A stretch of DNA of 64,000 nt from Tubulanus polymorphus (taxonomy: Eukaryota > Animalia > Nemertea): positions 22,218,210-22,282,209 of the forward strand of contig NC_134030.1 in NCBI RefSeq assembly GCF_964204645.1, read 5' to 3'. Under the pieces are notes generated by a model, which made no database searches, was not told the origin of the DNA, and was given only the letters and a program-made list of their open reading frames with translations. Positions 3,749 through 61,000 of this stretch are shown in pieces (positions within the stretch are counted from its first letter, which is position 1; each line of letters opens with the position of its first letter). A program made the position numbers and the translations under genes.

Positions 3749-3755
3749 CACGAAT

Positions 3756-15023: not shown

Positions 15024-18000
15024 CTAAGGATACGTCGTCTTCTTCAAGGCTTCAGGATTCATGTATTGATCTGTGTCTGTATCTCCACCGGCGCTAGGAG
15101 TTGTCACGTCTATCGCGCCTTCAGTGCTCCTGTACGTGTCCTCTTCTATCCCAGGTCCCATATCCATATAAGGAGTTGTATCTTTGCCCTTACCGGCTTC
15201 CATAGCCATGTGAGGAGCTGTATCGTTTTCATTCTCGGCTCTCATGGCTTTATGACTTTGTTGTAATCCAGTTACAGTATTTCTCAAAAGTTTTCTTTTT
15301 GAAACATTCTCGGGATTTCTGTCGTCGTCCGGGTCTTCGTAGATGTTCAACTCGTCATCTGTTGTTTCAAGCTGTTGCGGTTGTTTTGAAGTGTCCACAT
15401 GACCTTCACCGGTTTCAAGCTGTTGCGGTTGTGTTGAAGTATCTACATGACCTTCACCGGACGAACGTCGTCTGCATCTGAAATGTGTAATTTATGCAGC
15501 ATTTTTTACAGTTAATTTCAACGTATTTCGAAAAGGTTGTGAACTGCAAAATAACAGAAATCTAGTACCGATTTTGCACTATTCCACAATTGGTGCCAAA
15601 CGTACAACCAAACATTTTAAGGACAAATGGTATTACGTTGAGTGCTCTCTTTTAAGCTCTGATTTTCATAAAAGTCTTGACACAGACACATAAGATCTCT
15701 TCGCAAAAACTGGTTGTGCACAGTAGGTTCGAGTCCCGATCTCGCGATCCCGGCATTTATTTTTAAAAGTAAACATCGTTAACTGTTTAAATTAACCCAC
15801 CGGTCGGTTTGATTTTTATCATCATCCAGACTTACTGGCAGCAAACTCACTGATCTGGCACTCTGTATTATAACATGTTTAATTTTTTTCATCTTCAACT
15901 TACAACGAATTCGATGTTGTATTTAGATAATGTCGATGGCGATAGAAGGAGATTGACTTAGATCTAGCTGAAGTTTAGTCAAAACTTCGAAACCGTCAAA
16001 ATATCAACTGTGGGTTTTCCCATCAACACCGAGTTCATACCGGGAGGGGGGGAGGGTATGTCGAGTTCATACCTGCGAATAGTGATAACAGCGATAGCAA
16101 CGATCAAAAAGGATCCAGCCGCTCCACCGACGATGTATGAGGGGTCCGATGTAGTCTGAAAGATGTAACAATGATGAAATTACTATCACGAACGACCATT
16201 TAATCGCATATTTGTTACTGCGATCATCAACAATATTCAACCCGTAATGATTTAAAACGTGGTATCCTATATGAAAATAGCTTATACTGTGTTTAATTCA
16301 CGACAGATTTAGACGTGGATCAAGAGTGTTCCAAATCGCATAAGGGCACTCAATATTACGGGCTGCTTTATCCTTCACCGAGTGTCTGATGTTAGACTAA
16401 GATCGTAGAGCGACGGGGATTTTTGTGGAGGCAACCACTGCCAGAGAACTGTATCCATGCCTCACGAGCGCGGTAGCCACTGACATGGCTTTTGGGCACC
16501 TCCTTCGGAAATGTAGGTAGGAATTAAAGACAATTTTAGGCCATGCAAAATAAAAACAAACAACTGAATAAATTGACATCCAGCTCGACTATCTATACAA
16601 TAAAACAACTAGATATTCACCTTTGGTGGATCAGTATTTGCTTTGTCTGAAACCAAAAGTGAAAAAGAAATTCAGGCTTCGATCTCTGAACCTCACGTCT
16701 AACAGTTGACAATTCTACCACTATTAGTTCGATTATAGGGACCTGAACAGAGCCGTAAAGGCTGTGACATCACTAGGACGTTCGGGCCAGTTGAAAAAAA
16801 GTTTATTATGACATGTGGTAATTGAAATAGAAATAGTCATATTAAAACAGTCCTTGTTTTATATCTGATGATGGAAAATGATGTTTGTTTTGTGTTTTAC
16901 GCTTTTATGGTTGTTCAACTACCGCAACTTTCTACTGAAGATTTATATATACATATATTTACATTACGATTTTATTTTACACTCCAACCATTTCCATTGA
17001 GGAAAACATTATACATCGACACTAGTTCCCCCTAGCGGAGAACTAGTGTCGATATTATATTCTAACTCTTACTCCTACCTGTTTCGCTATTTTCCACGAC
17101 AGTGCTGCCATCTTTACCGATTTTAAAGGTAAATTCTCTTTCCATGCTGCGGGTTTCTGCGCCATGTTTCCACGTGAATTTCACCATAACTGCCACTTCT
17201 CCCGCCATATTTGTCGGAAACGTCAAATTTAAACTCATTTGATCGTTAACAGCTTCGCTCGCGACATTTCCGTCGCTGATGAATCGATTGTTAGCTTTAA
17301 AACGATGGGCAACATTGAACACGATTCCAGGTTGTTGCGCGGTCCATTTCACCACTCGACCTTCAACTCGCCAGTTCTTGAAATATTGACCAGTATCATC
17401 TGAAAACATAAACAAATCAGCACTCCTAGCGGTCATTCGAGAACTATATATTCAGAATAATAATCATGTACAAACCTTTGTTTTCGATGTCTATATTAAA
17501 GTTATCAGTGCATTTATACGTGCAGGTTTTATCGGGGATCTGAATAGACCACGTGTTTCCGGTTAGTCTAGTAGCATGCATTGCGTCATCGTCACCACAT
17601 TTACACGTGACAGTTGTTTGTACATTGTAATTGTATATCATATGAACAGTCGTGTCGTTTACTCGACTCCAGCTCCCAGCCGCACCTAGAAACATTATAC
17701 ACTTAAACATGCTTAATCGTGTTAATGACGTCATAGGGGGATCTATAAACTGCTCTCCCGCTTTTTACACTTACCAGTAGGGTCCGCCGGTGTAGTTTTA
17801 GGTTTGGGAATAACTGTTACTCTTAAATTTTCTTTCGATTTCTTGAGGTTCGTACGAGAGACGCATCTGAACTGTGAGTTGTTGAGTGTCATATCGCCAC
17901 GGATTGTTAATTGTTTCTCGGATGAATAAAGTTTCCACTGATCATCATTTTCTAATAGATAATCCCAGTGTATTCTCCCTTTATCGTATTTACACATGTA

Positions 18001-19868
18001 AGTTTTTGATTCTCCTTCATTCAATTTCACCTCATAATTCATTAAATCATTCCCCGATGCATTAACTATCACTGGAAAACCGTCTGTAAATAAACATATT
18101 CTGATTATGTCAATCGTTCAGTTACTGGTTTTATATTTCAACCTAAGTAATGATGATAAAAATCTTTCAATTTGTATGAAAAAATTGTTCATAGTAAAAA
18201 CTGCATCATGGTTACAAAAATCACAATGTGTTTAAATTTGTTCAGATCAATTTTCCGATCGAAGAGTTCCACAAAAACGTGGAGACAATAAATCGGATGC
18301 AACGTCCGCCTTATGTTTTAATAACGATTGGGAATTTTAACCTAATTTTAACTGAATATTAATTGAGTAAGTCTCCCGGGTTTAAGTTAATACCACCCCT
18401 GGGGGTATAAACAGAGCGGTAATTCACCACACAAAGAATTTTAGTATCCACGCTATGTTTGGGCCCCAAACATTAAATGATCTGGCAGATTGTGTTTAAA
18501 CTCATCTCTCTGTCTCTCTACCTTCGCTCCGTCTAGTAATGTGTATCTCTTCTTCGATGATCTCCGGGATAACGAGGGCATTGTGGAGCCGTGACGTCAG
18601 ATATCTGGACTTCATTCGCGGTGGTTTCACAACTAAATATAAAAAACAGTTTTCCAGAAAAAAAATCGTTAAAAATCGATTATTAGAAAACGCGACGCTC
18701 TCCTTAGAATTTGAAACTAATGTTCTCTTATTTCTAGTCGATTGAGATTGGAAAATTAAACAACATTATTCTAAATTGTGGACGCCTTAGAATTACTAGA
18801 TCATCAGAAACCATCGGAATCTATCCTATTTGAGTTTAGGGAAGGGTATAAGACCCTCTAGAAGTATGAAAACCCGTCATTTTTTGAAAATATTCTTTTT
18901 GAAATTAAGTTAGCACGATCTGAAATTAAGAAAGTTAGCACGTAAAGAGTTAAAAACACTCGTTTATGAAAAGACGTCTGTAAGACAAGCTGGCCTCTGC
19001 TGTGAGAGAATAATGTTTACAGCTTAATATCGGATTGACAATATCAGCTGATATTATTCATATCTGATACGTGAGACTCGTGGAACTTCCTTTTCATATT
19101 TATTGGTTTAGTCGCATACCAGGGACGGTGTCGTCCATTAAAATGACGTGTTTGTTGGAGAGGTTAAGATATTTTTTTTATGTTTTTCTCTACGTTCGGT
19201 TGGTTTATATTTTACAGAAAGCCGTATCAACATCGTGATTTAGGGTCCCGCTATAGTACAGAACGAAATACGAAGCAAAATGTAACGAAATGGTGATATT
19301 TCAAATACGACCGCACTTCAGTCCAAAGCTAGTTATAACACCAGCCACGGGACTGCGGTGGAAGGAATGTGGCGGTTTTAACGAAACGTCGAGCGTGAGA
19401 ATTTACGGTGTAATATTCTCACTCCCTGTTGCGCGGACGTAGGCCTACTGTAGAAATATATATAGAATATGGGAAAAACCGGGACTGCCCAAGCGATGGC
19501 ACCGAACACTCCGAAAAGACTAGCAAAAAACCCGAACAATAACATCCCAAAATCCACACCAAAAAAGAGTTGAACGTTTTATCAAGATAGCAAATTAGAA
19601 AAGGCAAGATTTTAGTGACCTGTGATACTGAACTCCCCTAATCGCTTAAAGATAATATTAGCCTTTGGGAGGGTACATCGGTTGCCTGACAGGGGTGGGA
19701 AAAAGGGGACCCCTCAACGGATCGCAAATCCGATAGAAACATAATTACTAAGACGAGTAATGACAGCCGCAGTTACTTACTTATAGCTCCAGATGTTTCT
19801 GTAGTGTATAAATCCCCCAGTAGAAATAAAACCGTGCAGATTATTAAGAACAAACTTGTCCTCGTCAT
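15024..19868 (-). CDS. Ig-like type I membrane receptor, paralogue 1 (~496 aa)
   Basis: Exons 19868-19781 (signal peptide [18 protein letters not shown]), 18083-17775 (Ig, C-W-C), 17685-17476, 17399-17079, 16646-16621, 16155-16073 (TM) and 15477-15024 (tail with NIYED, PYMDM, QYMNP). Phases are consistent, 1491 nt in total. Confidence 0.85.
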
Positions 19869-19963
19869 CGTGATATCGAAAGGATTGATTCTGGTAAACA
19901 TCTAAAATAATCAATCGCTCTGATTGAGGAAGTTTTATACATATACAGATACATACATACACC

Positions 19964-20190
<227 letters not shown>

Positions 20191-20369
20191 GTCGTGTCAT
20201 TTTTCTCCTGTATTATGTGTCTTGGTAATGCAGATTTAAAAAACAAATTTGTTGGTCATGCGAATGATCAAGATTTATACTTAAAAAGTATAATAGATTT
20301 GATAATGAACGATGTCCCTATGTTGAACTTAAGAAACTTGGTAGCAAGTTTAAGATTAATCCATCAAAC

Positions 20370-20500
20370 TTGACTGTCCTACAAGTCAATATTCATAGTC
20401 TTACGTGTAAATTACAAGAATTAATAATCGATAATCTAGCGAAGCAAATAATAGTTCTAGATATCATCATGATCTGTGAAACCTTCATAAATGACAAAAT
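20370..20500 (+). mobile_element. LINE AP-endonuclease fragment
   Basis: Degenerate copy of 26650-26790. Confidence 0.6.
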
Positions 20501-22086: not shown

Positions 22087-25000
22087 TTAATTATCATCCT
22101 CCAGAGGTTCATCGGTATCTTCCACCAACTGAAGATACGTCGTCTTCTTCAAAGCTTCAGGATTCATGTATTGATCTGTGTCTGTATCTCCACGGGCGCT
22201 AGGAGTTGTCACGTCTATCGGGCCTTCAGTGCTCATGTATGTATCCTCTTCTATCCCAGGTCCCATATCCATATAAGGAGTTGTATATTTGCCCTTACCG
22301 GCTTCCATAGCCATGTGAGGAGTTGTATCGTTTTCCTTCTCGGCTCTCATGGCTTTATGACTTTGTTGTAATCCAGTATTTCTCAAAAGTTTTCTTTTTG
22401 AAACATTCTCGGGATTTCTGTCGTCCGGGTCTTCGTAGATGTTCAACTCGTCATTTGTTGTTTCAAGCTGTTGCTGTGCTGTTGAAGTGTCCACATGACC
22501 TTCACCGGTTTCAAGCTGTTGCGGTTGTGTTGAAGTATCCACATGACCTTCACCGGACGAACGTCGTCTGCATCTGAAATGTGTAATTTATGCAGCATTT
22601 TTTACAGTTAATTTCAACGTATTTCGAAAAGGTTGTGAACTGCAAAATAACAGAAATCTAGTACCGATTTTGCACTATTCCACAATTGGTGCCAAACGTA
22701 CAACCAAACATTTTAAGGACAAATGGTATTACGTTGATTGCTCTCTTTTAAGCTCTGATTTTCATTTAAGTCTTGACACAGACACATATGACTCTCTTCG
22801 CAAAACTGGTTGTGCACAGTAGGTTCGAGTCCCGATCTCGCGATCCCGGCATTTATTTTTAAAAGTAAACATCGTTAACTGTTTAAATTAACCCACCGGT
22901 CGGTTTGATTTTTATAATCATCCAGACTTACTGGCAGCAAACTCACTGATCTGGCACTCTGTATAATAACATGTTTAATTTTTTCATCTTCAACTTACAA
23001 CGAATTCAATGTTGTATTTAAATATATATCGATGGCGATAGAAGGAGATTGACTTAGATCTAGCTGAAGTTTAGTCAAGACTTCGAAACCGTCAAAGTAT
23101 AACAACTTTGGGTGTTTCCTATTAACACGGGGGGGGGGGGTATGTCGAGTTCATACCGGGAGGTGGGGGAGGTTATGTCGAGTTCATACCTGCGAATAGT
23201 GATAACAGCGATGAGAACGATCAAAATGAATCCAGTCGCTCCATTCGTGATGTAGAGTACTGTAATGGTCCAGTGATTGGGGTCTGATGTAGTCTGAAAG
23301 ATATAATAATGATGGAATTGCCATCGCGAACGACCATTTAATCGCATATTTGTTACAGTGATCATCAACAATATTCAACCCGTAATGATTTAAAACGTGG
23401 TATCCTATATGTAAATACCAAACTGCGTTTAAAATCGCTACGGGTTCAGGCGTGGATGGAGGGTCCTATCTCGAGGGAGCTCCATGCCTCACGAGCGCGA
23501 TAGCTATTGAGGGGGTGTGGGGACCTTCCCCGCCAAATGGTAACGATTAAAGATTTGGGCCATTCTGGTCGATTTTGGAGGCTTGAAAGCTTAAAAACAC
23601 TGGACATTGTTGTAAAATTCTAACCCAAGACTGAGAAGAAAGGGACTTTTTTCCAAGTGATAGGATAATGAAGTTTTCACGGATATCTCCCAAAGTAAGA
23701 TTCTATACTAAACTTGTAATACATGTTATGCAAAATACAAAACAAATGAATTGAAATTAAATTTCAAATTGCTTTTATGGTAAATATCGCATTGTCATTG
23801 ACAAGAAAGTCTGTATACAATGCGCAGTATACAATATAAACTTGAAATGCATGTAATGCAAAATAAAGACAAACAACTGAATAAATTGACATCCAGCTCG
23901 ACTATCTATAGAATAAAACAACTAGATATTCACCTTTGGTGGATCAGTATTTGCTTTGTCTGAAAGGAAAAATGGAAAAGAAATTCAGGCTTCGATCTCT
24001 GAACCTCACGTCTAACAGTTGACAATTCTACCACTATTAGTTCGATTATAGGGACCTGAACAGAGCAGTAAAGGCTGTGACATCACAGCCTTTCAGAATA
24101 ATAATCATGTACAAACCTTTGTTTTCGATGTCTATATTAAAGTCACCAGTGCATTCATACGTGCAGGTTTTATCATCGGGGATCTGAATAGACCACGTGT
24201 TTCCGGTAAGTCTAATAGCATGTATTGCGTCATCGTCACCACATTTACACGTGACAGTTGTTTTCACATCGTAATTGTATATCATATGAACAGTCGTGTC
24301 GTTTACTCGACTCCAGCTCCCAGCCGCTCCTAGAAACATGATACACTTAAACATGCTTAATCGTGTTAATGACGTCATTGGGGGATCTATAAACTTCTCT
24401 CCCGCTTTTTACACTTACCAGTAGGGTTAGCCGGTGTAGTTTTAGGTTTGGGAATAACTGTTACTTTTAAAACATTTACTGACGTTTTCAGGGAATGTCC
24501 GATACTGGAGAAACATCTGAACTGTAAGTTGTTGAGTGTCATATGTCCACGGATTGTTAATCGTTTCCCGTATGAATAATATTTCCACTCATCATCATTT
24601 TCTAATCGCTTTTCCCACACTATTCTCCCTGTATCGTGTTTACACGTGTAAGTTTTTGATTCTCCTTCATTCAATTTCACCTCATTATTCATTAAATCAT
24701 TCCCCGCTGCATCAACTATCACTGGGAGACCGTCTGTAAATAAACATATTCTGATTATGTCAATCATTCAGTTACTGGTTTTATATTTCAACTTAAGTAA
24801 TGATGATAAAAATCTTTAAATTTGTATAAAAAACTTGTTCATAGTAAAAACTGCATCATGGTTACAAAAATCACAATGTGTTTAAATTAGTTAAATTAAG
24901 TTAGCACGATCTGAAATTAAGAAAGTTAGCACGTAAGGAGTTAAAAACACTCGTTTATGAAAAGACGTCTGTAAGACAAGCTGACCTCTGCTGTGAGAGA

Positions 25001-25851
25001 ATATTGTTTACAGCTTAATATCGGTTTGAAAATATCAGCTGATATTATTCATATCTGATACGTGAGACTCGTGGAACTTCCTTTTCACATTTATTGGTTT
25101 AGTCGCATACCAGGGACGGTGTCGTCCATTAAAATGACGTGTTTTTTGGAGAGGTTAAGATATTTTTTCATGTTTTTCTCTACGTTCGGTTGGTTCATAT
25201 TTTACAGAAATCCGTATCAACATCGTGATTTAGGGTCCCGCTAAAGTACAGAACGAAATACGAAGCAAAATGTAACGAAATGGTGATATTTCAAACACGA
25301 CCGCACTTCAGTCCAAAGCTCGTTATAACACCAGCCACGGGACTGCGGTGGAAGGAATGTGGCGGTTTTAACGAAACGTCGAGCGTGAGAATTTACGGTG
25401 TAATATTCTCACTCCCTGTTGCGCGGACGTAGGCCTACTGTAGAAATATATATAGAATATGGGAAAAACCGGGACTGCCCAAGCGATGGCACCGAACACT
25501 CCGAAAAGACAAACCCGAACAATAACATCCCAAAATCCACACAAAAAAAGAGTTGAACGTTTTATCAAGATAGCAAATTAGAAAAGGCAAGATTTTAGTG
25601 ACCTGTGATACTGAACTCCCCTAATCGCTTAAAGATAATATAAGCCTTTGGGAGGGTACATCGGTTACCTGACAGGGGTGGGAAAAAGGGGACCCCTAAA
25701 CGGATCGCAAATCCGATAGAAACATAATTACTAAGACAAGTAATGACAGCCGCAGTTACTTACTTATAGCTCCAGATGTTTCTGTAGTGTATAAATCCCC
25801 CAGTAGAAATAAAACCGTGCAGATTATTAAGAACAAACTTGTCCTCGTCAT
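22087..25851 (-). CDS. Ig-like type I membrane receptor, paralogue 2 (~410 aa, lacks domain 3)
   Basis: Exons 25851-25764, 24733-24419, 24329-24117, 23959-23934, 23293-23190 (TM) and 22573-22087, 1233 nt in frame. Tail has NIYED, PYMDM, TYMST, QYMNP and TTYLQL. Confidence 0.85.
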
Positions 25852-25934
25852 CGTGATATCGAAAGGATTGATTCACATCTAAAAAATAATCGCTCTGATT
25901 GAGGAAGTGATATACATATACAGATACATATACC

Positions 25935-26225
<291 letters not shown>

Positions 26226-26649
26226 CACTAATATTGTAACAATTCAACTTCAAATAGTCAGATATTTTATATCACACGATTTTTGCGATTTTCCTTTTTG
26301 ATATGTAAAGTGTAAAGTGCGCCATCATTTAAGGAAAGCTTTAACGGAAACAAATCTTCCGCAGAAAGGAATTAATTACTCATTATATATTGTTAGCTAA
26401 GTTTAGCTATTGTTGTCTCGGAGACACTCTGGTGCTATTATGCTGCAAGTAGTTGACACCGTGTCATTTTTCTCCTGTATTATGTGTCTCGGTAATGCAG
26501 ATTTAAAAAACAAATTTGTTGGTCATGCGAATGATCAAGATTTATACTTAATAAGTATAATAGATGATTAACAGTCATTTGATAATGAACGATGTCCCTA
26601 TGTTGAACTTAATGAACTTGGTAGCAAATTTAAGATTAATCCATCAAAC

Positions 26650-26790
26650 TTGACTGTCCTACAAGTCAATATTCATAGTCTTACGTGTAAATTACAAGAA
26701 CTGAAATTAATGATCGATAATTTAGCGAAGCAAATTATAGTTCTAGATATCATCATGATCTGTGAAACCTTCATAAATGACAAAAATGCT
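26650..26790 (+). mobile_element. LINE (CR1/L2-type) AP-endonuclease N-terminal fragment
   Basis: [11 protein letters not shown]...LDIIMICETFI matches the EEP/APE start motif (N-I-x-S-L ... D-I-I-x-I-x-E-T). Confidence 0.7.
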
Positions 26791-35005: not shown

Positions 35006-35074
35006 TAATGTGCAGCGATTCGTGTCCTATTTCATATTTCATGTATTAATACCGTGTGTTTATTTGGCAAGTCA

Positions 35075-35120
35075 TTTTAGACTGAAGAAGGTTGGTAGTA
35101 ACCACCCGAAATATTTCTCA
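35075..35120 (+). ncRNA. Penelope-associated hammerhead ribozyme-like motif
   Basis: CTGAAGA, hairpin GGTTGGT...ACCACC, then GAAATATT, directly after the GIY-YIG remnant. Confidence 0.5.
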
Positions 35121-46000: not shown

Positions 46001-49000
46001 AAAAGTGAACGCAATAGCCCGCTGAAGTCCCAAGTGGGCTAACAAGTAAAGCTTCTACAGACATCATTGATTGTTCCTACAAGTGTTGCATGTATACTGC
46101 TTGTATACAAGGCAAAATGCCCAATCCCTCGAAGAGAGGTACTCATGAGATGTACCAATGAGATGTGCTCATGAGATGTACTCATGATATTTACTCATGA
46201 GAGGTACCCGTACTCACTAGCGCTATGACTCCTCACTATTTCAATGCAATCACCCAAACATTTGTCAACTGAAATGAAAACAAATAGATAAGTAAATAAT
46301 TTAAGTTGATACGAACTGTGACCAAAGAGTGACGACTTAAAACACTCATTAGTTTAACTCTTAAAATCTGTGTCCACGTGTATTATGTGCAAGGTGCAAT
46401 ACAATTACATACATATGTTGATCTAGGTGTACATTTATATGTCATGATTGATGAATATAATCTTCAATGAATTCAACGCCACAGTTTTCTTAATCTGAAA
46501 AATGAGTTGTTATTGTATTGATATTCACCTGTTTCTGTCAGTTCAGTTGTATTTGTTTCACTGTCAATTTCATCTCCTATTCAAACAGAACAAACAATTA
46601 TTATTCAAAACCTGAAAATCAGATCATTTAATAAAACGTTCAGTGAAACAAAAATTCACTATTTACCGAAACATTCTTGGACTTGTTTCCAATAACCTGT
46701 GTTTGTCTTTAAAGTTTTACTGGTAAATTTACTGAGTTCAGACACTATATGTAATAAACAATAGACAAGTTTTTATACAATAGAATTCTATTATAAATCA
46801 CAAACTGATTTCACTGTGGGTTAGCGGTAAAAATCCCCTTGGTAAAAATTCCCTCCTTTTGAATGCAGTCTAAGTAGATGCAATCATATTTCATATAATT
46901 GATACATAGATCGAATTTATTCATATTTTATTGTGAAACACCATTAGGATATCGTGAGCATACAAACTATTGTATATACTATTTGAATTAAAACATAAAA
47001 CGAATAAACGGTTCATTAATACTAAATTGGTACCGTACTTAAAGTTATCGCAGTTAATGAAAGGGTTCATCGCACATTTCAAACATATTACACTAGCTTG
47101 AATCTAAAATATTCCAAATTAAAAAGTTCATTTTTTCTAATAATTCATGGCATCGCGCTGCTCAAATATACCACAAGTTACCAAAAGTTCACAGTTAAAG
47201 AAAAATTTCCAGTTCGATTTTTACCTAGGGGATTTGTGAACTTACTCGCGCGAGATATATCATATTCCCACTGTTTTGATGACGAACTGCTGCGAGCCTC
47301 TTTACATTTCTCTTTTAAAATAGTCTCTAGTGAATCTGTAATTATACAATGTTTCGATGTTCGAGGAGCAAAGAAAACTTAGATCCATTGTCGACACCAT
47401 TGTTACATAGGGTACAAATAGGTTCCTCTCTAACTGTATTATCCCATCTCCCAGTTTCCACCGGAAACTTGTGGTTGCATGTTCTGAATATTATATGGTT
47501 GTCTGGTATATTAGATATTAAGTATGGTTTAGTACTAAATCCTGCTTGAATGAACTGTAGTACGAGCCTTTGGAAGAGATAGAACATAATCAACTCCTCC
47601 ATCTCAGCAAAAAATGATCTCTTAATCTCTGGCGAAGAGATACTTTTGGGAATTGGGAATAATTGGCTTAGTATTGAACCAATAGTATATAAAATGTTTT
47701 TGATATTTACAAATTTGCAATTGTTTTTGATACTTCTTTTTTTGTGTAGGCCATAAAGAGCTTGATAGATTGCCCCTGATCTCCACCCTTACTCAGTACC
47801 AGTCGACCTTCACCCTTACTCAGTACCAGTCGACCTTCACCCTTACTCAGTACCAGTCGACCTTCACCCTTACTCAGTACCAGTCGACCTTCACCCTTAC
47901 TCAGTACCAGTCGACCTTCACCCTAACTCCCGGTACTGATTTAATTTGTTAATTAAAACACCTAACAGTCAACAGTATTCACCTTTAAATCCCGGGATTC
48001 TGTTTGCAATAATTTGTTTGATATGAAACACTGAAAAAGAATAAACACAATAGATTACTGCAGGGTCAGAGAAACATGTTCTATGTCTTTTTAATAGCTT
48101 GTTCTACGGGGTAAACCTATTAAAATATCATTTCGGAGGAAATAAGAATTTAAATAAAAATTCCCTTAGTAAGATTAAAATCAGGATGAGGGAACTGTCG
48201 ATAGGGCAATATATGTTCAAACAAACGATTCTTGGAAAGTTCGAATTATTCACACTGTGATCAAAAAAGAACCTCGCGTATTTCAAATTTCATCATTCGG
48301 TGGAGGTGAACAAATTCTTTTTGCTCGTTTTTTCACTGAATTCGTCCCACAATTATTTTAATTTGACTTTTCTTCGGAGGCCATAAACCAAGCTTCAAAA
48401 AAGGCCCAAACCAGAGAATAGATATTGAATGTTTATAAAAGGCTCGCAGTATTGAAGATCAGTGAGGAATATCTGTTACTCTGACATTTCAAGCAGAAAA
48501 CTTCTATCCATCTTCAGAGATCTATATTCAGCTTCGAAGCCACTACTTTTGATTTCGAGTCACCACGAAGACAGTAATATTCCCCCAAAACTGTAAAACA
48601 AGCTGCAATTCAACCTGCAGGCTATTTGCATGAACTTAGGAAGCATTTCAGTTTTAAGCGTTCTGAACAGCTATGCTGGACTTAATAGAGCTGTGTAAGA
48701 ACCACTATGTGACGTCACATCTTAAATAGTTGAGACTACTTTCAGTCTTGAATATCATGAAGAGAAAAACCCACAATATAGATCTAAAACACCAGCTCTT
48801 GTTTTTTCTTAACGCTGTTTCATCTGGTTGTGTCCTATTAATATCCCTTCAGTAGAGGTTCCTGGTGTGACACTCCCTACTTTAAACCATACTTCAAATA
48901 AACTCTTAAGATGGGCGGAAGAATTCCACCCAAAACATTAACACTAAAAAACAAGAGCGCTTATTTTAGATCTGTATTGTGGGTTTTCTCTTCACGACAT

Positions 49001-52000
49001 ATCATATCATTCATTGATTAATTAGATAAGTCTTTAACATGTAAGTTGTTATCAGTACTTACTCGCTATTTCATCTTTAGCTGAAACACAGAAAACAACA
49101 ATGACTTACGAATAAACATTAAGTAGATCTAAACAGTTACATTCATACAGTTCACTTAAACAGTATGTAATTAATTCTACATAATTCTTTGTTATTTTGG
49201 TCTCAATTAAAAGTGTAATCAGAATTGATTTATTTGTAATATCATTGCACTTTAAACTTCAACCTTGAATTTTACTCACTACTATAGACTACAATTCCTC
49301 GTTTCTTTAATTCCACTGAAATCACAAATAGAAATTGAATATGAATTCAGCAATAAATCAATCCGCGATGAAAAGTGAAACAATACTTATCAGCTTCAAA
49401 ACGTTTTACATGGACATTTGACACGAAAATGCGACATGTGACATGTGAATAAATTACGAACATGTCGATGAAGATGTTTTATCTAACTAAATTGAGCATT
49501 TGACCCTACATGAAACGTGTAACCATGTATAATTTGGGAATATGTGTTTGTTATATGTTTGTGCACATGTGCATGTTACATATAATATATATGAGCATTT
49601 TGTATGTATATACGTTTTTACATGCATGTATAATTTGATATATAAAATTGATATTTACTTTCATTCATATCAGTGATATATTTAAACGCCTGACAAACTG
49701 AACTGTGAATTATTCTGTTCAATTCCTCCTCATTTTTTCTCTCTTCATTTTCCTCTTGTTTCAGTTTCTCTTCGAGTTCTTTCAGAAATCTTTCAGCTCG
49801 TCCAGCGTACAATTCTAAAAGTGATTCACCGTGAAAACAATGAGAAATTGAGATCCACAAAACCTTGAGATTGAAAAATGATGGAATAAACCCTGCTGAT
49901 TCTGATGCAATCCTTACATAGACCTCGTACCTTTGGTAGATTCAATAACTGCGATTTTCAATTTAATTTCTGAAAAAAAGAATATAATTCATGACTACAA
50001 CACAGCATCCACTACTGGTGACATCAACACATCTATTTTAATCTATCCAAATATTTGAAAGAAGTTCTGTTCCTGTTTCTGGTTTATCAGAAAATCATGT
50101 AAAATCATAATGACTATAAAATATCGTTTAAAGTGCATCGTTAATTGCTAGCCATTTGTTTTTAAGCGTCTGCTTTCGACCCTTGACCTCAATAGTCATA
50201 GTTTATTACTATGAGTTTCTTACCTAAAACATTTCGGCTTATTTTATAAATACCTGAAAAAACAGTTGAACAACTAGATTAACACATCAGAAACTGATTT
50301 CCAAAAATGCCACATTCTGACAGAAATCCACCCCATTAGGCTCCGAGCCCCCTGGGCCATCTTTTAATGATGTTTATTTACCGGGTATTATCAGAGCCAC
50401 TACATTGGAATCCAATATGCATGAACCAAAACATAAGTTTTTTCACGCTGTTATTAATTTTCAGAAAAAGATACAGCAGCTTTCTTGGATGCAGCAATTT
50501 AGATATTTTTGGAACCACCCACTAGAGAAAGGGACGGCTCCTAATACGTACTACGATTGATTTTGAACAGACAGTGGAACCAATGATATTGCGTGGCTTT
50601 CTCGTTTAAACGCGACTGATTTTTAATAGATGAACTCGGTCTGAAGAATATTCACATCGATACAAATTGTGATCTAGCAATATTCTTAGTTTCCGCATCG
50701 ATTGCCACCGTGCAATAACCTATACTTAATAAGTGGCTCTGAATCAAAACAGATGCCTTTAACAATCTGATGACATGATCATCAAATAAGTCAGCTCAAA
50801 GCACAAAGATTGTTTACACTTACTTTTATCTAGTTCTGTAGAATTGTTCTCTTCTAATATCTGCAAACTTGACTCCGATAAAACTGATTCTACAAATAAA
50901 TACATGAGTAAAATAATGCAATAGCCCGATGCGACTAAGTCTCAAGTTCAGGGAAACCGCGCCACTTTGGGAAGAGAGTTGAAATGCACAACAATCAGAA
51001 AATCTTAATATTCAACGCCCCCTGGCGATCATATAAAGAGATGAATGACCTAGAAACTCACCACACATTTCCATAGATCGCGTTATGAGCTACAATTTTG
51101 AAATTGACTGGTATAAGTTTTGAAATTGACTGGTATAAGCCTTTCATTTCTTTTACTTCTATTTGATTTTACGGCAGAGTCGACATACAATTATGTCCCG
51201 AGAAAAAATGTCATTTTGCTTATAATTCATTGCATCGCACAGCTCAAATACAAGTAAACAAGAGTTCACAGTTAAAAGATAAAGCTAACAAGAGTTTACA
51301 GTTCCGAATTTTAAGACATTACTAATAAAAAGTTCAATTATTATTATTAATTCTAACAATTTAAGAGTTTACTTAAGAATTTATCCCAACGAAAGATTTC
51401 ATTGCACAGTTCAAACATATTTCAGTCTCATTGCTTTGAAATGTTTTTGAAAATCACCAAGTGTAAATAAGAATATCAGGTCCAATGTTAATAAATTCTT
51501 GGCTTACTTCTCCTCATATTTCCTTCTGGCATCTTTACCTCTGGCATTTTTACCTATGGTGGAATTTTTCCTCTGGCATTTTTACTACTGGTATTAAAAC
51601 CTATGGCATTTCTACCTCTGGCATTATTATCGCGTACCACAAAAAACCAATGACCTCGAAACTCAAACACAATTATACAACGAGCTTCGACGATTGATTG
51701 TAGTTACAAACTACGCGTAGGTGCCAATTGGCAAATTGTATATTATTCAATATTTAACTCCCCCTGGTGGCAAAAACAAAACATTGACTGATTCCAAATT
51801 CCATGTAAGGAGATGAATGCCAATAATAATCAAATATAAGCACATCATTAATAAAACTTAAAACCGGTTGTTGTTTTCCTGAAAAAAAAAGTTTTCCATT
51901 TAGAAATGAGTACTGATGACGCTGAGGTTGATATTGACCAGATCAGTCAAAACAGGAATTTCATATTGCATTCGTCATGAAGTGGATTAATTTAATTGTT

Positions 52001-55000
52001 GACAATTATTGTTCCACATTACCAGGTAGCTAGTTTTATTGCACCTCAGATCTCACATTAACCAATTATATGAAGATATTAGCAAAACGAAGACATTTTA
52101 ATTCTTACCACAAACATCTTTGTTCGAAAAACGGTACTGGTCGGCCACTCCCATTTCTGTAACACAGAATATCAAGACAGTAATATTTACATTTATTTAG
52201 GAGTTTCATAAATACAATTTTATGACAATATCTGAATAAATGGTAGATACTCTTGCAACAAACCTTTCTGTGTTTCATCGCTAACCTTCTTTTTATCTAT
52301 TTGTCTGACGAGGTTTTCTGTAATTAAACAAAATGTTTAACACGTTTATAATTGTCAGCCCCCCCCCCTGATAGATGAACTGAAAACTCACCATTCTGTT
52401 GTTTAACTTCTTTATTAAGTGTTTCCTTAACAAACTTTTCTATAAAAAGATACAGTGATATATCAGTTATAATTGAACAGCCTCAGCACCAGTTTAAACA
52501 TCATAGTGAATATTATAACTTACCAGCAATTTCAACAGTTGCTGAAATATAACGTAAAAGTGTTTGAAGAATATATTTCGCACATGACTCTGAAGTACAG
52601 ACAACTCGCATGTACATGTAACTCAGTTGTACATGTATGTACAGAGAACTAACTTGCACATGTACAATAGATTATAAAGCACATGTATTTTACAAACAGT
52701 TGTGGATAAATGAGAATTAAAACCTACGTTTTATGTTGGCTATTCCTCGTTCACATAATTCAGCATCTACAGTAAAAATAAACACAATCAATTATTCAAT
52801 GATTTCACAACAAACTCCACAGTATTTTTACTGAAATGATTTATGGAACCTACCGGACATTTTAGCAAAGTAATCAACAATAGATTCAACTGCTGAACCA
52901 ACTGAAAATATAGAAATTCATTATTACCGTTTACTGGAGAGAAAGCTGATTTTTTTTCGAAGGAAATACATTTTTCAACCAGAAAGACTTTTTCGTCAAA
53001 AGTGAACAATTTTTAGTAGTAATTCCAAATTATAGTACTACGAAGACTTTTTAAAACTCGTTGGAATCCTGTGTAGAGAAGCACATATAAAAGTAGAACT
53101 CAAGATAGGCTACAATTCATAGTTTTACAGACCATTTTTGATAAACTCTTTCTCTTTGTTTGTAAGGGGTCTTTTCTCTTCATTCGATTTGTCACTCAAA
53201 CTAACATGAACTTCATCTGAAACACGTTAAAACATGAAACACTTGATACATAATGTTTCTCGTCAAGTCGTGAGTTGATTTATCCAGAAAAAAAAACTTC
53301 ATTCTTTGACGACGAAAGATTTACAAGATGAACTGCAACTATTTTTATGCTGCATGCTACTACTAGTTTGTATCAAATCTTACTTAATTTGTCTCTTTTA
53401 TTCTGGATTGTATATATGTCTCATAATTTTGCCATAACTTAAGTACTCCTCATGATTACAATTAAGATAAATCGGGATAAAATAAAAATGACAAATAACA
53501 TCTCAACTCGAAACCTGATTTCTAAACCCTCTACCAGCCACTTCTATCAGGATTATGTAATATGGTATTCTGGAATAGTTAGAGTCTATACTGGTAGAAA
53601 CGAATAATATGGAATTCTGGAATCTGTAGAATTGCAACCTGCCAAAAGACTGGCGGCAATCTTGAATAACTTCGTCACTTTTCGAACACAGCTGAACAAA
53701 CTGATCTATCGACAGTGGATGATAATCCGGTAGAGACCAATCAAAGTCTAAACGACTGCCATCTTTTCAAATCAGATTTTCCATATTTCCAGAAGGGTGC
53801 ATAGATGGGTGTATAGCTGTACAAAATGATCTATCAAACAGTGAATAATAACGATACCTTCATCTCTATTGTAAACTGCATCAGCGCCATCTATTGACCT
53901 CTTCTCGTTCAGTAATGTATCTGTAATACATTTACAAAATGAGTTGACAGTAGAATAATAATCAATAAACTCATACATCAATAACTGTATTCAATCAACT
54001 CTTACCGATCTCATTTGATAGTTTCATTTTTAAATTCTTTATTCTAAAGTATTTTCCTGTCAATAGATAATTATAAACACATTTGAATCGATGATTCGAG
54101 TTGAAGAGGAAATATTGAGTCGTTTCGTAAACTTACTTAGGATTTCTTTCACCAAATCTAACATACCTGAAAATACATTGATCAAACTCTACTTAAACTT
54201 AAACACATGTGCATGTAGACAAATCACATGTGCATACACACTTCACATGTCATGTGAACTGCTCACGTTTATTGACGTGTGCACTTACGTGCAATCATGT
54301 ACACCTATGTTAACTTACATGAACATGTTTCCGCAACTCACAACTTACTATGTATCAATCAAATGTCAATGCACACATAACTCACATGCGCATGTTTACA
54401 TACATCACATGCGCATGTGTACATGAACTTAAAACAAACTATAGGTAAACAATAACTTACTTTGATCATGTGATAACCGTTGGAACAGGTATTCTCTGAT
54501 AGCTATTGCTGAAATGAAATATAGAAAGCATTTGTTCAATATTTGAATAAACTGTGCATCAAACAGTTTGAATTACTGCTGGATGAAGATAGGAGGCAGA
54601 TGTGTCATATTTAGAGACAGACAGTATCCATGATTGGAACCAACCAACGAAAGCTGTTCCAGTTCTGTTCCTCCCTGGCATCAGAGACCCACATCACCTC
54701 AAAACTTACTCTCACTACTCTTACCTCTCACTCCTCTTACCTCTCACTCCTCTTACCACTCACAACTCTTACCACTCACTACTCTCACCTCTCAATACTC
54801 TTACCACTCACTCCTCTTACCACTCACTACTCTTACCACTCACAACTCATACCACTCACTACTCTTACCTCTCACTACTCTTACCTCTCACTCCTCTTAC
54901 CTCTCACTACTCTTACCACTCACTCCTCTTACCTCTCACTCCTCTTACCTCTCACTCCTCTTACCTCTCAATACTCTTACCACTCACTCCTCTTACCACT

Positions 55001-58000
55001 CACTACTCTTACCACTCACAACTCATACCACTCACTACTCTTACCTCTCACTACTCTTACCACTCACTGCTCTTACCACTCACTACTCATACCACTCACA
55101 ACTCATACCACTCACTACTCTTACCACTCACTCCTCTTACCACTCACTCCTATTACCTCTCACTACTCTTACCACTCACTACTCTTACCACTCACTACTC
55201 CTACCATTCACTACTCTTACCTCTCACTACTCTTACCACTCACTACTCTTACCAGTCACTACTCTTACCACTCACTACTCTTACCAGTCACTCCTCTTAC
55301 CAGTCACTCCTCTTACCACTCACTCCTATTACCTCTCACTACTCTTACCACTCACTACTCTTACCACTCACTACTCTTACCACTCACTACTCTTACCACT
55401 CACTACTCTTACCTCTCACTACTCTTACCACTCACTCCTATTACCACTCACTACTCTTAACACTCACAACTCATACCACTCACTTCTCTTACCACTCACT
55501 TCTCTTACCACTCACTACTCTTACCACTCACTACTCTTACCACTCACTACTCTTACCAGTCACTACTCTTACCAGTCACTACTCTTACCACTCACTACTC
55601 TTACCACTCACTACTCTTACCACTCACTACTCCTACCACTCACTACTCTTACATCTCACTCCTCTTACCACTCACTACTCTAACCACTTACTACTCTTAC
55701 CACTCACTACTCATACCACTCACTACTCTTACCTCTCACTACTCTTACCACTCACTACTCTTACCACTCACTACTCTTACCTTGTTTATCCTTATCTCTC
55801 GTTATCTCCCAATCATTCTCAGTTTCGTAAACATCGCCGATTATTCTAACAATTTCTATAAAACAAAAGTCTATTATATTATTTACTGTTCAAATGTTTC
55901 AAAGACCCGAAAGTTTAAACAGATCAAAGTAACAGACAACACAAATATTGCTACAGATATTTGAACAAGCTCCAATGTTGTTAAGTGGTTATCTTGGGGA
56001 ACAGAACTCTAGTCAGCCATCTTGATTCTGATTGCATCTAGCATGAATTCAAGGGTTTATGACTACGGTTGTGATAATGAAGCAATATCTGTTGCATATA
56101 ATTCAGGGCCCGGTTTTATAGACTGGTATTAACTTAAACCCGGGGTTACCTCAATTCATTTTCAATTCTGTTAACCCCTGGGTTAAAGATAATACCATGA
56201 GTCTGTAAAACCGGGCCCTGGTGTTTAGTGAATGAGTTTTGAAACTATGAACTGTATTCATGTAAGATATTCTACATGTTATAGAAATAAAGGGTTAATA
56301 ATTCTATAAATACCTGGCTGCAGTTGGTCACGTGTTTTCATCCAATTCTCATGATCTACAAAGAGAAAACAACACCTAAACATTATCAAACCGATATCTG
56401 AGAATATGTGCAGTAAATCATGTGAGAGAATCTTACCTTTTTCATACCAGGTTTCACTTGTCCAACGCAACAATTCATTCACGTCTTCAGGTTTCGGACC
56501 CAAACGCGGTACTGTTAATTAGAAAATAGAAATACTGTTTATTTACACGATGCACGTTCACCTGACAAATCAACCCAATAAAGAAACAGTGTTATTTGGA
56601 TAATGTTGGAGCCACCCACTAGAGATAGGCAATGGACCTAATGCTATGATACTGCAATACTTTCTTGGCGCAACAGATTTTATACATGTATCTACCCTGT
56701 ACATCATGATAGTAGTGCAGTATCCACAGGGTCCAGTTCCACAGTTCCGAATTAAGATTTAACTCTGATTTAACTAATTGAAAATGAACTAACTTTAACT
56801 CAGAGTCAACTCTAACTCACATCTGTGGAACTGGGACTTGGTCTTTCCAGACGAACTCGGTCTATATTCACGTCTATACAAACTGTGACCTAGGAGTGAC
56901 GACTTCCGAACACTCTTAGTTTGGACACTTAAACATGAGCAAAATATGCATGACTATAAAGCTGTCGATGACTACACAGTTTTTATGACTAGGGACACCA
57001 CGCCCACTTGGGAAGTGCTTTAAAATGCTCAAAAATCTGACCATTTCAATATTCAACGCCCTCTGGTGAACATGTAATGAAACCAATGCCCTTGAAACAC
57101 ACCACAATCATAGAACTGGGCCTTTGAAAGATACACATATATAGACCAAGATAATTGATCAAAGCGTCTTCAAAATGTCCCTGAAAACTTCAAAATGTGT
57201 AAAAAGTGCTGATTTTGGCGAACAACAACGGGTGCCAGTCGGCCATCTTGATTCAGATCGGGCCAATGTTTGGGCTGAAGATGTATTAGGTTAGATGCAA
57301 GCCAAATATCAAGAAAACTTCCCAAAATAACTGGATTCCGGACGGACCACGGAGGATGAAAATTGAATGCGATATATATATTGTTCTCTTTTTCCATTGG
57401 AATTTTCTGGAGTTTCAAAATCTATAACATTTTTTTAATGTTTTCCAAATTTTTCATGTCGTATGAAATTGGCTGATCAAAAATACCTGTCTCAGCTATA
57501 GATGATCCCTTTCCATAGAATAGCCACCACAAATCAGATCTTTATTTACAAAGAAATTATAACAAGTTATACAAAAACCCAAAGGGACCCAAAAATAACC
57601 CAAAAATAAAGAAATTAAAGGGTCTTCAAAACTTCCCAAAATACTGGATTCCGTCTACGGACTGACGGACGGACCAACGGAAGGACGACGGACGAAAAGT
57701 GAACGCAATAGCTCGCTGGTCCCAAGTGGGCTAAAAAGGCAAAAAAAAGATTAATGTTTAAAATTTGTTAATTAACGGTTTTAGTTCTGTGGCCTATCTA
57801 ACAGCTTAAGACCAGTCTAAGTTCATTTTGGTTTCTATAACCGATCTAACAATTTAAGACCAGTCTCAACTCATTTTGGTTTCTATAACCAATCTAACGA
57901 TTTAAGACCAGTCTAAGAGTTTACGACCACTTTTTGAATAAGACTCTGCAACTAGGGTCCCGAAATTTAACATTTTGACTGATAATCGAGAATCAACTGC

Positions 58001-61000
58001 GTACCACCTTGGGACCCTTGACTCCCTATAGCCTTGTAAACTATTTTTTCATTTTAAGCATTATGTATAATGAATTATTACAGGACTTACAATTTCCACA
58101 TCTACACAGTTGATCATCAGGTTTTCTGCACCGCACTGTCAATTAGAAATATTAGTATTTTATTTCAACAGTTTGTCTGTTATTGTTTTTCAGATTAAAT
58201 GATGGTTTTATGTAAAACTTACAGCAGTCATGACGCCACAGTATAAACAGTATTATCAGAATCAGTAATATCAGTAATATACCGATCACAGCACCAGCCA
58301 CACTGCCTCCACCATGATCTAAAACTAATCGATTTATTATATATCAATCAGCAATTGATTTCACAGCGTTGATATTATTTATCTATTTAGGACTAGCCTC
58401 AAATAATTGTTTCATAACCAAAATCAACCGTGATATACATCGGTGGTTTAGGATTTTTAGAGTATGTTGGTTGATTTTGACTTCAGGGACAAAATTCTAT
58501 CAGTCTGTACTCAGTATTCAGATAAAATCCGGTGATTTCTGACCAACGTGGAATCTTACCTGGTTCATCAGTTGGACCGGCGTTATGATAACCAGCGACA
58601 TCAATGACCCTTTCATTAATACCGTCAGCCAAACACCGCCCTCTATAGTCAGTTGTGGTACTATTTACGATAGGAATCGTTATATTCCACTGATAGTTTG
58701 ATAGTTTTTGAACGACAGCTGGAGGGTCACATGTAACTTGTTGAGTCAATGGGTTACTATTAACTGTTACATTATACGCCGCGTGTGTTTCATTTTCACT
58801 GGATTTCTTGTAAACTGGTGCAAAATCTGTTTGAAAAATACAAAAGGTGAAGGTTGAATCTGACAAATATCTGGCCTAGCGGAGTTCTGAACCCCTGTCA
58901 CAGGAGCCATGCTCCCTTGGCAGGGATTCGAACTTGATGGCAAATATAATACGGCGCAGCAATATTATCTATTAACGTTCGTAGGAACAACAGTTATGTT
59001 TTTTGCATAAATCGCGTAAAGTAGCAGGGAATTCTTTTTTAACTGTTATTCTTAGGTTGATTGCTTAAATTCGACAGATAAATCTGTTACTTACAATGAA
59101 CAACGATTGGATTAAATTGTCGAGGTTCTGGAAACGTAAGGTTCTCCTTTACAGCACATCGAAATGACGTTCCATTGTGCAGTTTGAAATCAGCTTTGAA
59201 CTTGTAGGTCGTGTCAAAACCTTTTAAATGCCCTTTGCGAGGTACTTTACGAGGTTGTGGATCAGGAATTGGCTGCCATTGTTCAGAACCTCTTCTCTTC
59301 TGCTGGTATATCACTGTAGGATCGGGCCTCCCGCCTTCTGTTCTACAAATATATTTTACAACTTCTCCTTCAGTTCTAATGTCAGGTTGTCCGGTGAGAT
59401 TACCTTGTGTTTGAATTTCATCGGGAAAATCTGAAAAGATAAAGATGTAAATGTATTTTTGGATGATATCATATTTTGGACGATCAAATTCATGAATAAC
59501 GGGATAAATACACTGTAGCTCAGCTCTCATGCGCGCCACGTTATTTGCTTGTTAGGCACCGTAAGATATGGCAGGGGAATTCATATGTGGACACCCGTTT
59601 GAATGTTAAAACTCAAACAAGAATTCAGACTGATATCGTATGGAAATTCTCCGATGACAATACTATACAACTTACACGTAACATCCATTTTAGTTTGATG
59701 TAGTATTTGATTTTGAAGTGGTCTCGGTAATATTAAACCATTGTATCTCCTCAACTGACATTGAATCAATGTTGCGTAAATCATGTATCTATAATCCATC
59801 TGATTCCTGTTGATAACTCCATCTTTCACCGCAGTATTTACACCTTGCTCATGGATATTTACAATATCCGTTGAACCTTCAGTAAATCCATCAGCATACC
59901 ATTTTACTTTGATGTTTTGATTACCGATCTTACTAGTGGCTTCACAAGTACAAGACAGTGATTGGAATTGAGCCACCTTACACGGGTTTTCATTTATCCC
60001 TATACCTACAACAAATTTAGATGGAAACATTTACAATTTACCAGATTCCGTGGAACTGGAAAACTAGGGGCCCAGGGACACCAAGCCCACTTGGAAGTGG
60101 TTTCAAATGCTCAACAATCTAACAATTTCAATATTCAAAATATGGTAACAAAATATGTCGAGCGACCAATATAATAAGGAAATACTAAGTTATTCTACTT
60201 TTCAACGCCCCTGGTGACCATATAGAATAACTAATGACCTTGAAACTCACCACAATCATTGAACATGTCATGAGCTACAACTTTTCAAACTACGAATGAG
60301 TACTTACGACACCAAGATGGCCGCCAATTGCGTCATAATTTGCTGATGAAAAATACCTGTCTCAGGTATAAAAGACCCCTTTCCAAAGAATACCCATCAC
60401 AAATTGCAATGAAAAATGGCAAACCATCAGGAAGTTACAGGACTGAGAATCAAGGTTAAAATTGACATTTTTGGGCACAAAAAAGGTCACAGGACGGCCA
60501 ACTCGAGTCCGAGTGACCCAATTTTTCTCATGCTGATAGACCCTTAGAGGATACAACTATATCTGAAAGATCAAGGTAATTGATAAGCGTCTTCAAAATT
60601 TCCTTCGAAAACTTCAAAGATGTGTAAAAAGTGCTTCTTGGGCTGAAGATGTGTCTAGGGTAGATACATGCATAAATGAAATATCAAGAAATTACCTTGA
60701 AGCGTCTTCAAAACTTCCAAAAATAACTGGATTCCGTCTACGGACGAAGGTCCGTACGAACGGACGGACGGACGGACGACGGATGAAAAGTGAACGCAAT
60801 AGTCTAAAGTCCCAAGTGGGCTAAAAAGGAGATTAGATCTTAGACGATTTGTTTGTTTTTCAAAAGGACTCAAAACCTAGAGGTCGATAGAGTGTATAGT
60901 CGAAATTGATTGGCACAAATGCTTATATGATTCTATCAAAATGAAGATTTCAATAGTTCTATTGTTGAATACATGAAACTCAGAAACACTTGAAACTAAA

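Follow-up and report, generated by a model that had tools for sequence, protein, structure and literature searches.

How did a single gene cluster come to place immunoglobulin (Ig)-like ectodomains on intracellular parts as different as a tyrosine-motif tail and a NACHT ATPase? The question is raised by a 64,000-nt stretch of the 268 Mb genome of the palaeonemertean Tubulanus polymorphus (C6:22218210-22282209; hereafter, the window). Database proteins mapped to four neighboring genes in the window, all on the minus strand: three small genes (A, B, and C; the trio) encoding Ig-like domains and a tail with tyrosine (Tyr) motifs, and a large gene of the NOD-like receptor (NLR) type encoding Ig-like domains, a transmembrane (TM) segment, and a NACHT domain. 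These co-oriented genes, a Tyr-tail trio and an Ig-TM-NACHT receptor, likely belong to a lineage-specific, exon-shuffled receptor complex. What is new is a negative control on kinship between trio and NLR, a bridging family (the S family), NACHT-less twins of the NLR, a chimeric origin of the trio, and a recurrent NLR-trio order. Genes were mapped by tblastn of RefSeq-type proteins (P0002, P0006, P0017, P0031, and P0032) on the window; queries were single window exons or whole database proteins. Paralogous proteins of the window genes carry the RefSeq name Tubulanus polymorphus. We regard the gene structures, the domain families, and the sharing of modules as established.

A first-pass annotation had aligned by eye the first two domains of the trio (d1 and d2) with domains C and D of the NLR, and had proposed that phase-1 exon shuffling produced paired receptors, decoys, or co-receptors. 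Its description of the locus was confirmed in part. All nine peptide motifs that it quoted were present on the minus strand (trio d1 at 17863-18018 and d2 at 17534-17659; NLR C at 59156-59371 and D at 58633-58794), protein mapping confirmed that the four genes are adjacent and on the same strand, and every exon boundary read had canonical AG/GT sites in phase 1. Its right-hand bound (59430) was too narrow, cutting the NLR gene, which runs past 64000.

The trio genes

The trio genes share a common build, in which a signal-peptide exon precedes the exons for the two Ig-like domains, d1 and d2; single exons for the TM segment and the tail follow a micro-exon that encodes the stalk. Gene B (22090-25851, minus strand) corresponds to protein P0031 (410 amino acids, aa) at 99-100% identity, with its signal peptide at 25762-25851, d1 at 24417-24734, d2 at 24118-24330, stalk at 23934-23960, TM at 23189-23296, and tail at 22090-22574. 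Genes A (15036-19868) and C (28414-33984), both on the minus strand, were traced by tblastn of P0031 and P0032 and by reading their splice sites. Both carry two exons absent from gene B: a third domain, d3 (106 aa, beta-rich, without cysteines), and a 38-aa relic exon, a 114-nt open piece in which two fragments of P0032-type Ig exons (corresponding to residues 162-186 and 347-359 of P0032) are fused and which is coding in the paralogue model P0152. In gene A the exons lie at 19779-19868 (signal peptide), 18523-18636 (relic), 17776-18083 (d1), 17477-17685 (d2), 17077-17399 (d3), 16621-16647 (stalk), 16072-16158 (TM, with a shortened segment), and about 15036-15478 (Tyr-motif tail); in gene C they lie at 33904-33984, 31881-31994, 31137-31454, 30836-31048, 30436-30759, 30059-30091, 29478-29594, and 28414-28901, in the same order. 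Long (TA)n-type microsatellites abut the signal-peptide exons of gene A (19780-20370) and gene B (25763-26298).

The tail of gene B contains YEDP, YMDM, YMST, YMNP, and TTYLQL; across the trio family YEDP, YMDM, YM(S/R)T, and YMNP are kept in 6-7 copies. YxxM and YxN are the SH2 consensus motifs of p85 and Grb2. The tails (by their outer bounds 15027-15491 in A, 22090-22587 in B, and 28414-28914 in C) come in two types: gene A and two paralogues stop early, after TTYP, while genes B and C and one paralogue read on through TTYLQL...DDN. The early stop takes away only the last tyrosine, within a terminal TxYxxL that resembles an immunoreceptor tyrosine-based inhibitory or switch motif (ITIM/ITSM).

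Among trio paralogues d1 is the most divergent exon (65-78% aa identity vs. 84-92% for d2 and d3). The ratio of non-synonymous to synonymous substitution rates (dN/dS) was about 1.0-1.1 in d1 and d2 (~1.1 in d1) and 0.5-0.7 in the tail and d3 (0.5 in the tail). Synonymous divergence in d1 was itself 2.6-fold above that of d2, d3, and the tail; for the d1 of genes B and C, dN was 0.063 and dS 0.020. This pattern suggests a mosaic history (gene conversion of the 3' exons, for example, or exchange of d1), whether or not diversifying selection also acted.

By profile and predicted structure, d1 and d2 are Ig-fold domains. An AlphaFold model of d1-d2 from gene B (predicted local distance difference test score, pLDDT, 74.6) folded into two Ig-like sandwiches, which Foldseek matched to the T-cell receptor, FcgRI, LILRB1, and KIR3DL1 (E 1e-5). 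For d1, hhalign gave a match to generic Ig profiles with a probability of 96.7-98.6%. In a library of 1.84 billion proteins, the d1 profile matched, at E <=1e-3, 119 proteins with several Ig domains (repeats of I-set and Ig_3), many of them bacterial. The d2 domain had no sequence-level Ig match in Pfam or by hhalign against generic Ig, and its Ig sandwich appeared only in the predicted structure.

Sources of the shared modules

When the trio tail exon was searched in the genome, relatives 47-85% identical were located at ~30 loci, many of them 2-3 kb downstream of exons ~50% identical to NLR domain C. The S family (P0154-P0162, 332-595 aa), described from RefSeq proteins and genome-search coordinates, combines a signal peptide, one C-type Ig domain, a mucin-like stalk, a TM segment, and a YMDM-repeat tail. 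Its Ig domain is 45-59% identical to NLR C (hidden Markov model [HMM] E 1e-22 to 1e-34; Smith-Waterman z 35-55 against window C). Its signal peptide is nearly identical to that of the trio (30/32 residues between P0162 and gene C), its TM and juxtamembrane stretch match the trio, and its tail shares the YMNP motif and the TYLQL end. With P0158 as query, one search matched the C exon of the window at 49% (E 1.5e-19) as well as the tails of the trio at 70-75% (E 1e-40 to 1e-43). One S-type gene (C6:22292965-22297232, minus strand) lies ~4 kb upstream of the NLR gene, 11-15 kb past the right end of the window; the local order is thus S, NLR, trio C, trio B, trio A, on a single strand.

The d1-d2-d3 cassette of the trio is held in common with P0032 (789 aa, C6:23.04 Mb), a protein with three extra Ig domains and a different tail bearing an ITIM-like SVYGEV. 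A remnant of the upstream Ig exons of P0032 persists as the relic exon of genes A and C. Sequence comparison identifies the trio as a chimera, in which an S-family frame (signal peptide, stalk, TM, and Tyr tail) received a P0032-type d1-d2-d3 cassette.

On the NLR side, at least 12 array genes at 21.68-22.10 Mb have an ectodomain, TM, and linker 70-80% like those of the NLR and no NACHT. Ectodomains are 75-80% identical between the array genes and the NLR, with or without NACHT, and many NACHT genes have no ectodomain. The array repeats regularly, with a period of ~35-40 kb; in each unit a small S-type gene (a C-like Ig exon with a tail exon ~2.2 kb downstream) is followed, ~7 kb further on, by a large gene encoding ectodomain A-D, a TM segment, and a coiled-coil tail with 2-4 repeats of a ~130-aa module. 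Judged from these alignments, Tyr-tail receptors are bridged to the NLR by the S family instead of the trio. The first-pass interpretation is therefore partly supported: phase-1 exon shuffling has indeed placed related ectodomains on different predicted signaling outputs in this cluster, and the NLR shares its modules through the S family (C-type Ig on a Tyr tail) and the array genes (no NACHT), but not through d1 and d2 of the trio.

All five places at which trio-family genes were found are on C6. In four of them these genes lie 6-24 kb downstream of a same-strand NACHT exon: in the window and at 18.44-18.47 Mb, at 18.17-18.20 Mb, and at 17.76-17.77 Mb, NACHT being broken at the last two. Five loci have C or D exons 7-16 kb upstream of a same-strand NACHT exon. 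The recurrent order fits duplication of an NLR-plus-trio block; functional pairing of the two behind the conserved order is possible. We put forward tentatively, as less likely than not, the wider reading that 17.5-23 Mb is an immune-recognition complex in which one fast-evolving set of Ig modules was phase-1 shuffled onto at least three outputs, and in which the NLR-then-trio order would reflect functional pairing and not mere block duplication. The outputs, in this equally tentative scheme, would be PI3K/Grb2-type tyrosine tails, a coiled-coil tail, and a coiled coil with NACHT and leucine-rich repeats (LRR). If so, the complex would comprise receptor sets that see related ligands and signal differently.

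The NLR gene

Protein P0017 (LOC141906708 X2, 2393 aa) mapped to the NLR gene exon by exon at 95-100% identity. Its ectodomain has nine Ig-like domains in the order A-B-C-A'-B'-A-B-C-D; the paralogues P0002 and P0006 have four. Within the window, tblastn of P0002, P0006, and P0017 located ectodomain exons at 58561-63916 (minus strand): A' at 63623-63916, B' at 62897-63232, A at 61471-61773, B at 59677-60012, C at 59096-59428, and D at 58561-58824. The signal peptide and a further A, B, and C (the first 350 residues) lie past 64000, beyond the right end of the window. Pfam recognized C2-set_2 in exon C (E 0.0033) and I-set in exon A (E 0.01). Ig exons are internally duplicated at 62897-63916 in the window and in the stretch past its right end. 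An 82-bp tandem repeat (61707-62301; 7.3 copies, 97% identical) occupies the intron upstream of exon A; each unit copies the acceptor and the first ~20 codons of that exon, forming a row of potential alternative acceptors.

The TM exon (58224-58322, minus strand) encodes the hydrophobic run GAVIGILLILLILIILFILW. The open frame continues from it into an 86-nt intron with canonical sites, on which ground an early frameshift downstream of the TM segment was considered and rejected. The cytoplasmic linker, as mapped with P0017, comprises ~450 aa spread over many phase-1 micro-exons at 46213-58136 (minus strand), among them 58092-58136, about 56438-56511, 55782-55856, 54453-54509, 54007-54054, 53859-53921, 53134-53226, 52393-52440, 52110-52157, 50807-50890, 49660-49827, 47984-48034, and 46213-46272. 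It is coiled-coil-like and matched no known domain; a PDB search gave only weak matches to the Bicaudal-D coiled coil. In every run, contig depth at 56665-58000 exceeded that of neighboring bins hundreds-fold, and odd joints were numerous; a high-copy repeat or transposon probably lies in the intron that separates the TM-proximal exon from the linker exons.

The last coding exon, identified by Pfam and translation, is single and large (40347-43151, minus strand), with a 921-aa open frame at 43109-40347 that encodes NACHT, helical domains, and an LRR-like C-terminus. NACHT matched Pfam PF05729 at E 8.2e-17 (62 bits, cut-off 26.7; residues 91-246), with a Walker A motif GEPGMGKTT and a Walker B motif LLDSFDE. 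A match to NLRC4_HD2 (E 5e-4) fell under the Pfam cut-off. The C-terminal third looks, by sequence, like ribonuclease-inhibitor-type LRRs: Pfam gave only LRR_FBXL18 at E 0.048, a single-sequence search of PDB found no significant LRR, and with a profile of 11 paralogues two LRR proteins, ribonuclease inhibitor and RSU1 (Ras suppressor 1), came first at E 0.2-0.6. No N-terminal death-fold or BIR effector domain was found by Pfam in the window exons or the protein models. The genome has ~25 paralogous NACHT exons.

Several lines of evidence bear on whether the ectodomain, TM segment, and NACHT belong to one transcript. Predicted extracellular Ig domains, a TM segment, and an intracellular NACHT occur in one model in P0017, P0002, and P0006, the last two being independent paralogue models with a signal peptide, A-D, TM, and NACHT joined by short, differing linkers. 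At least 12 array-gene models span the ectodomain, the TM, and the whole linker, which is 70-78% identical; P0001 consists of the second half of the linker (from MSDAELC) plus NACHT. In contigs of runs X1, X2, and X5, GT..AG joints were observed at 58091>56511, 56437>56355, 55781>54504, and 54006>53920, and the C>D joint (59095/58822) was found in contigs of runs X2 and X5. The joints in these runs end at 53859, with none into the NACHT exon.

Test of kinship between the trio and NLR ectodomains

Pairwise searches gave some encouragement to the by-eye alignments. In BLASTP, d1 matched C at 24% identity (E 2e-6 in one comparison, helped by intron-translated residues) and d2 matched D at 26% over 61 aa (E 6e-4). 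The d1 and d2 of P0031 aligned with C and D in one collinear high-scoring segment pair (~20% identity, 25-33 bits). Against 1000 within-domain shuffles, the collinear score reached z 8.0 (p ~2e-5) with window C+D and z 11 with an array gene, compared with z <=4.3 across controls that comprised the pairs A+B and B+C, C+D in swapped order, and the N-terminal Ig domains of P0032; for A+B and other Ig pairs z was <=2.6. Shuffled domain by domain, z was 4.6 for d1-C, 3.6 for d2-D, 3.0 for d3-C, and 1.9 for d1-A; other pairings were near 0. With shallow paralogue profiles, hhalign placed C and D as the best partners of d1 and d2 among A-D (E ~0.009, probability <5%, values too weak to be informative), and a deeper C-type profile lowered E for d1 from 0.0087 to 1.6e-4 (probability 50%).

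Any two Ig domains resemble each other to some extent, and by-eye Ig-Ig alignments require a generic-Ig control. As decoys we used Ig domains of unrelated proteins from the 1.84-billion-protein library, picked with the HMM of the other family as a guard against bias. In hhalign, the d1 profile matched the decoys chosen by the C-type HMM at E 3.7e-10 (96.7%), and the C-type profile matched those chosen by the d1 HMM at E 1.3e-6 (90.7%), so that each family is 2 to 6 orders of magnitude nearer to generic Ig profiles than to the other. The specific claim of d1/C kinship fails because both are closer to generic Ig than to each other, an outcome that the first-pass annotation had itself named as refuting it when it proposed the profile-profile comparison. 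The alignments that it described exist and are collinear, but they do not go beyond generic Ig resemblance.

Searches with the family models agreed. The C-type HMM placed trio d1 117th among 599 non-family Ig domains, at <=5 bits, compared with E 1e-22 or better for true C-type members; d1 thus falls outside the C family. NLR and array proteins scored 1-4 bits with the d1 profile, and the trio and NLR HMMs did not cross-match in the genome or in the 1.84 billion proteins. Genome searches with d1 and d2, both as single sequences and as profiles, recovered 8 trio-family copies; the few weak extra matches, obtained with the profiles, lay elsewhere, and none of the 60+ C or 30 D exons was among the matches even up to E 10. 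The C-type domain of the S family stands no nearer to d1 than NLR C does, so that the S family supplies no intermediate between d1 and NLR C. For d2 and D, which are mutual best matches and both unlike generic Ig, E was 0.013, and p was ~0.01 before correction for about a dozen comparisons; kinship here is marginal at the sequence level. On present sequence comparisons, d1 and d2 are kin to C and D at the level of the Ig superfamily only, and an identity of ~20% rules out the trio and NLR as a matched pair in the KIR sense.

Alternative explanations

It is unlikely, in light of these comparisons, that d1-d2 of the trio are a diverged copy of the NLR C-D cassette, moved by phase-1 shuffling and retained as paired, decoy, or co-receptors for related ligands. 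Such a copy would account for a two-domain collinear alignment that exceeds other pairings, for the choice of C and D as best partners, for the gain in d1 signal with a deeper profile, for the mutual match of d2 and D, and for the linkage of the two families at four of five places. Against it stand the generic-Ig control, the low rank of d1 by C-type HMM, the failure of d1 and d2 profiles to find any C or D exon, the lack of an S-family intermediate for d1, and the uncorrected p of the d2-D match; moreover, the d1-d3 cassette has a clear other source in a P0032-type gene, and phase 1 is generic to Ig exons.

Two further readings concern the genes themselves. The Ig-TM-linker-NACHT model could be a chimera of annotation or read-through, formed from an array-type gene and a cytosolic NACHT gene (starting at an internal linker Met) in tandem. 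P0001, on another scaffold, begins exactly at such a Met (MSDAELC) without an ectodomain, NACHT is missing from most ectodomain genes and an ectodomain from many NACHT genes, and the spliced joints stop short of the NACHT exon. We consider this explanation very improbable, given that array-gene models read straight through the MSDAELC region in one frame, that the NACHT exon is entered in phase and lacks a separate start codon close to its 5' end, that P0002 and P0006 link TM to NACHT by other, short linkers, and that C or D exons precede a same-strand NACHT exon by 7-16 kb at five loci. The trio genes, for their part, might be decaying duplicates without receptor function, a reading to which we give little credence. 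It would explain the dN/dS of d1 and d2, the loss of d3 in gene B, the shortened TM and early tail stop in gene A, and a relic exon that marks past deletions; yet every exon of the three genes keeps an open frame and canonical splice sites, the tail and d3 show constraint, the four Tyr motifs are invariant across seven copies, and gene B is a RefSeq model.

The reading that we prefer, that of an exon-shuffled complex of Tyr-tail and Ig-TM-NACHT receptors, also has observations that weigh against it. A dN/dS of ~1 in d1 and d2 could reflect relaxed constraint and not diversifying selection. The AlphaFold model of C-D had a pLDDT of 41.7, too low for a fold comparison with d1-d2, and the LRR reached significance in no sequence test. 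The RNA origin of the contigs is deduced from their GT..AG joints; the contigs are short and 95-99% alike, and some could stem from alleles or close paralogues. One contig of run X1 has a D>TM joint (58560>58276) that falls 46 nt inside the TM exon with AT..AC ends, which could represent an alternative acceptor, a paralogue, or an alignment slip. Finally, P0017 matches the window at 95-100% only, being a cluster representative or the product of another haplotype.

Proposed mechanism and comparison with known systems

The membrane topology, signaling, and immune role that we infer from sequence are as follows. The trio would be small type I membrane receptors whose fast-evolving d1-d2 bind ligand; binding would lead to phosphorylation of tail tyrosines and the docking of PI3K-p85- and Grb2-type SH2 proteins. 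The fourth gene would encode a type I membrane protein of about nine Ig-like ectodomains, a TM segment, the ~450-aa coiled-coil linker, and a NACHT with LRR-like end. Extracellular ligand binding or clustering may then drive oligomerization of NACHT beneath the membrane, in the manner described for a sea-cucumber receptor, AjNLRC4 of Apostichopus japonicus, so that the NLR would act as a surface-anchored ATPase of the STAND (signal transduction ATPases with numerous domains) class.

AjNLRC4 is described as a pattern receptor of the plasma membrane, with Ig-like ectodomains, a TM segment, and an intracellular NACHT; its Ig part binds microbes, and the receptor drives phagocytosis (PMC8699970). 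A related sea-cucumber protein, AjNLR, is also known (PMC13133943). Within the literature searched, the Ig-TM-NACHT design was published for echinoderms only. Like AjNLRC4, the nemertean protein combines Ig, TM, and NACHT in one protein without CARD or PYD. AjNLRC4 differs in having two Ig-like domains rather than about nine and in lacking LRR, whereas the nemertean protein has the coiled-coil micro-exon linker and an LRR-like C-terminus, belongs to an expanded family with NACHT-less twins, and showed no second TM segment such as follows NACHT in AjNLRC4, no dedicated test for one having been made. The nemertean design likely arose independently.

NLRs are textbook cytosolic sensors. With NOD1/2, NLRC3/4, and NLRP the nemertean protein shares a NACHT bearing both Walker motifs (A and B), a helical domain weakly like NLRC4_HD2, and a putative LRR-type repeat region at the C-terminus; it differs from them in having no CARD, PYD, or BIR, in an N-terminus composed of a secreted Ig array and TM segment, and in repeats that fall short of statistical significance as LRRs. 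The trio resembles the KIR, LILR, and FcR receptors as small type I receptors with tandem Ig-like domains encoded by tandem, fast-evolving copies. As in KIR and LILR, tails occur with or without a terminal ITIM/ITSM-like motif, and the Foldseek matches include KIR3DL1, LILRB1, and FcgRI; the YxxM/YxN tails recall CD28 (YMNM) and DAP10 (YINM). The trio differs from all of these in lacking sequence-level kinship, in carrying the motifs in the receptor's own tail, and in the extra d3, which is not recognizable as Ig. No charged TM residue of the kind used in adaptor pairing was noticed, though no search aimed at one was made. The paired logic of KIR and LILR may have a closer counterpart in the array genes and the NLR, at 75-80% ectodomain identity with or without NACHT. 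In the Hydractinia Alr cluster and the Botryllus FuHC region, fast-evolving type I receptors of the Ig superfamily form large clusters; their tails bear Tyr motifs, and their exons are shuffled. The nemertean cluster is likewise fast-evolving, with Ig-superfamily domains, Tyr tails, and shuffled exons, but coupling to NACHT is absent from those complexes, and nemerteans are solitary.

A NACHT switch directly under an extracellular Ig array, so far studied only in sea cucumbers, is thus now indicated in a spiralian. The locus provides natural controls, in the form of the ectodomain without NACHT and the C-type Ig on a tyrosine tail, and the wiring of surface recognition to a STAND ATPase therefore becomes testable. 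It is also a clean case of module shuffling in an invertebrate receptor cluster.

Other features of the window

Outside the receptor genes, an intronless open frame of 347 aa (8554-9594, minus strand) begins with MANSTARCP and has hydrophobic stretches that give it the look of a seven-transmembrane receptor. A partial second copy lies at 3330-3770 on the same strand, and large in-frame minisatellites occur around and between these frames at 4.6-5.9 kb and 9.6-11.8 kb.

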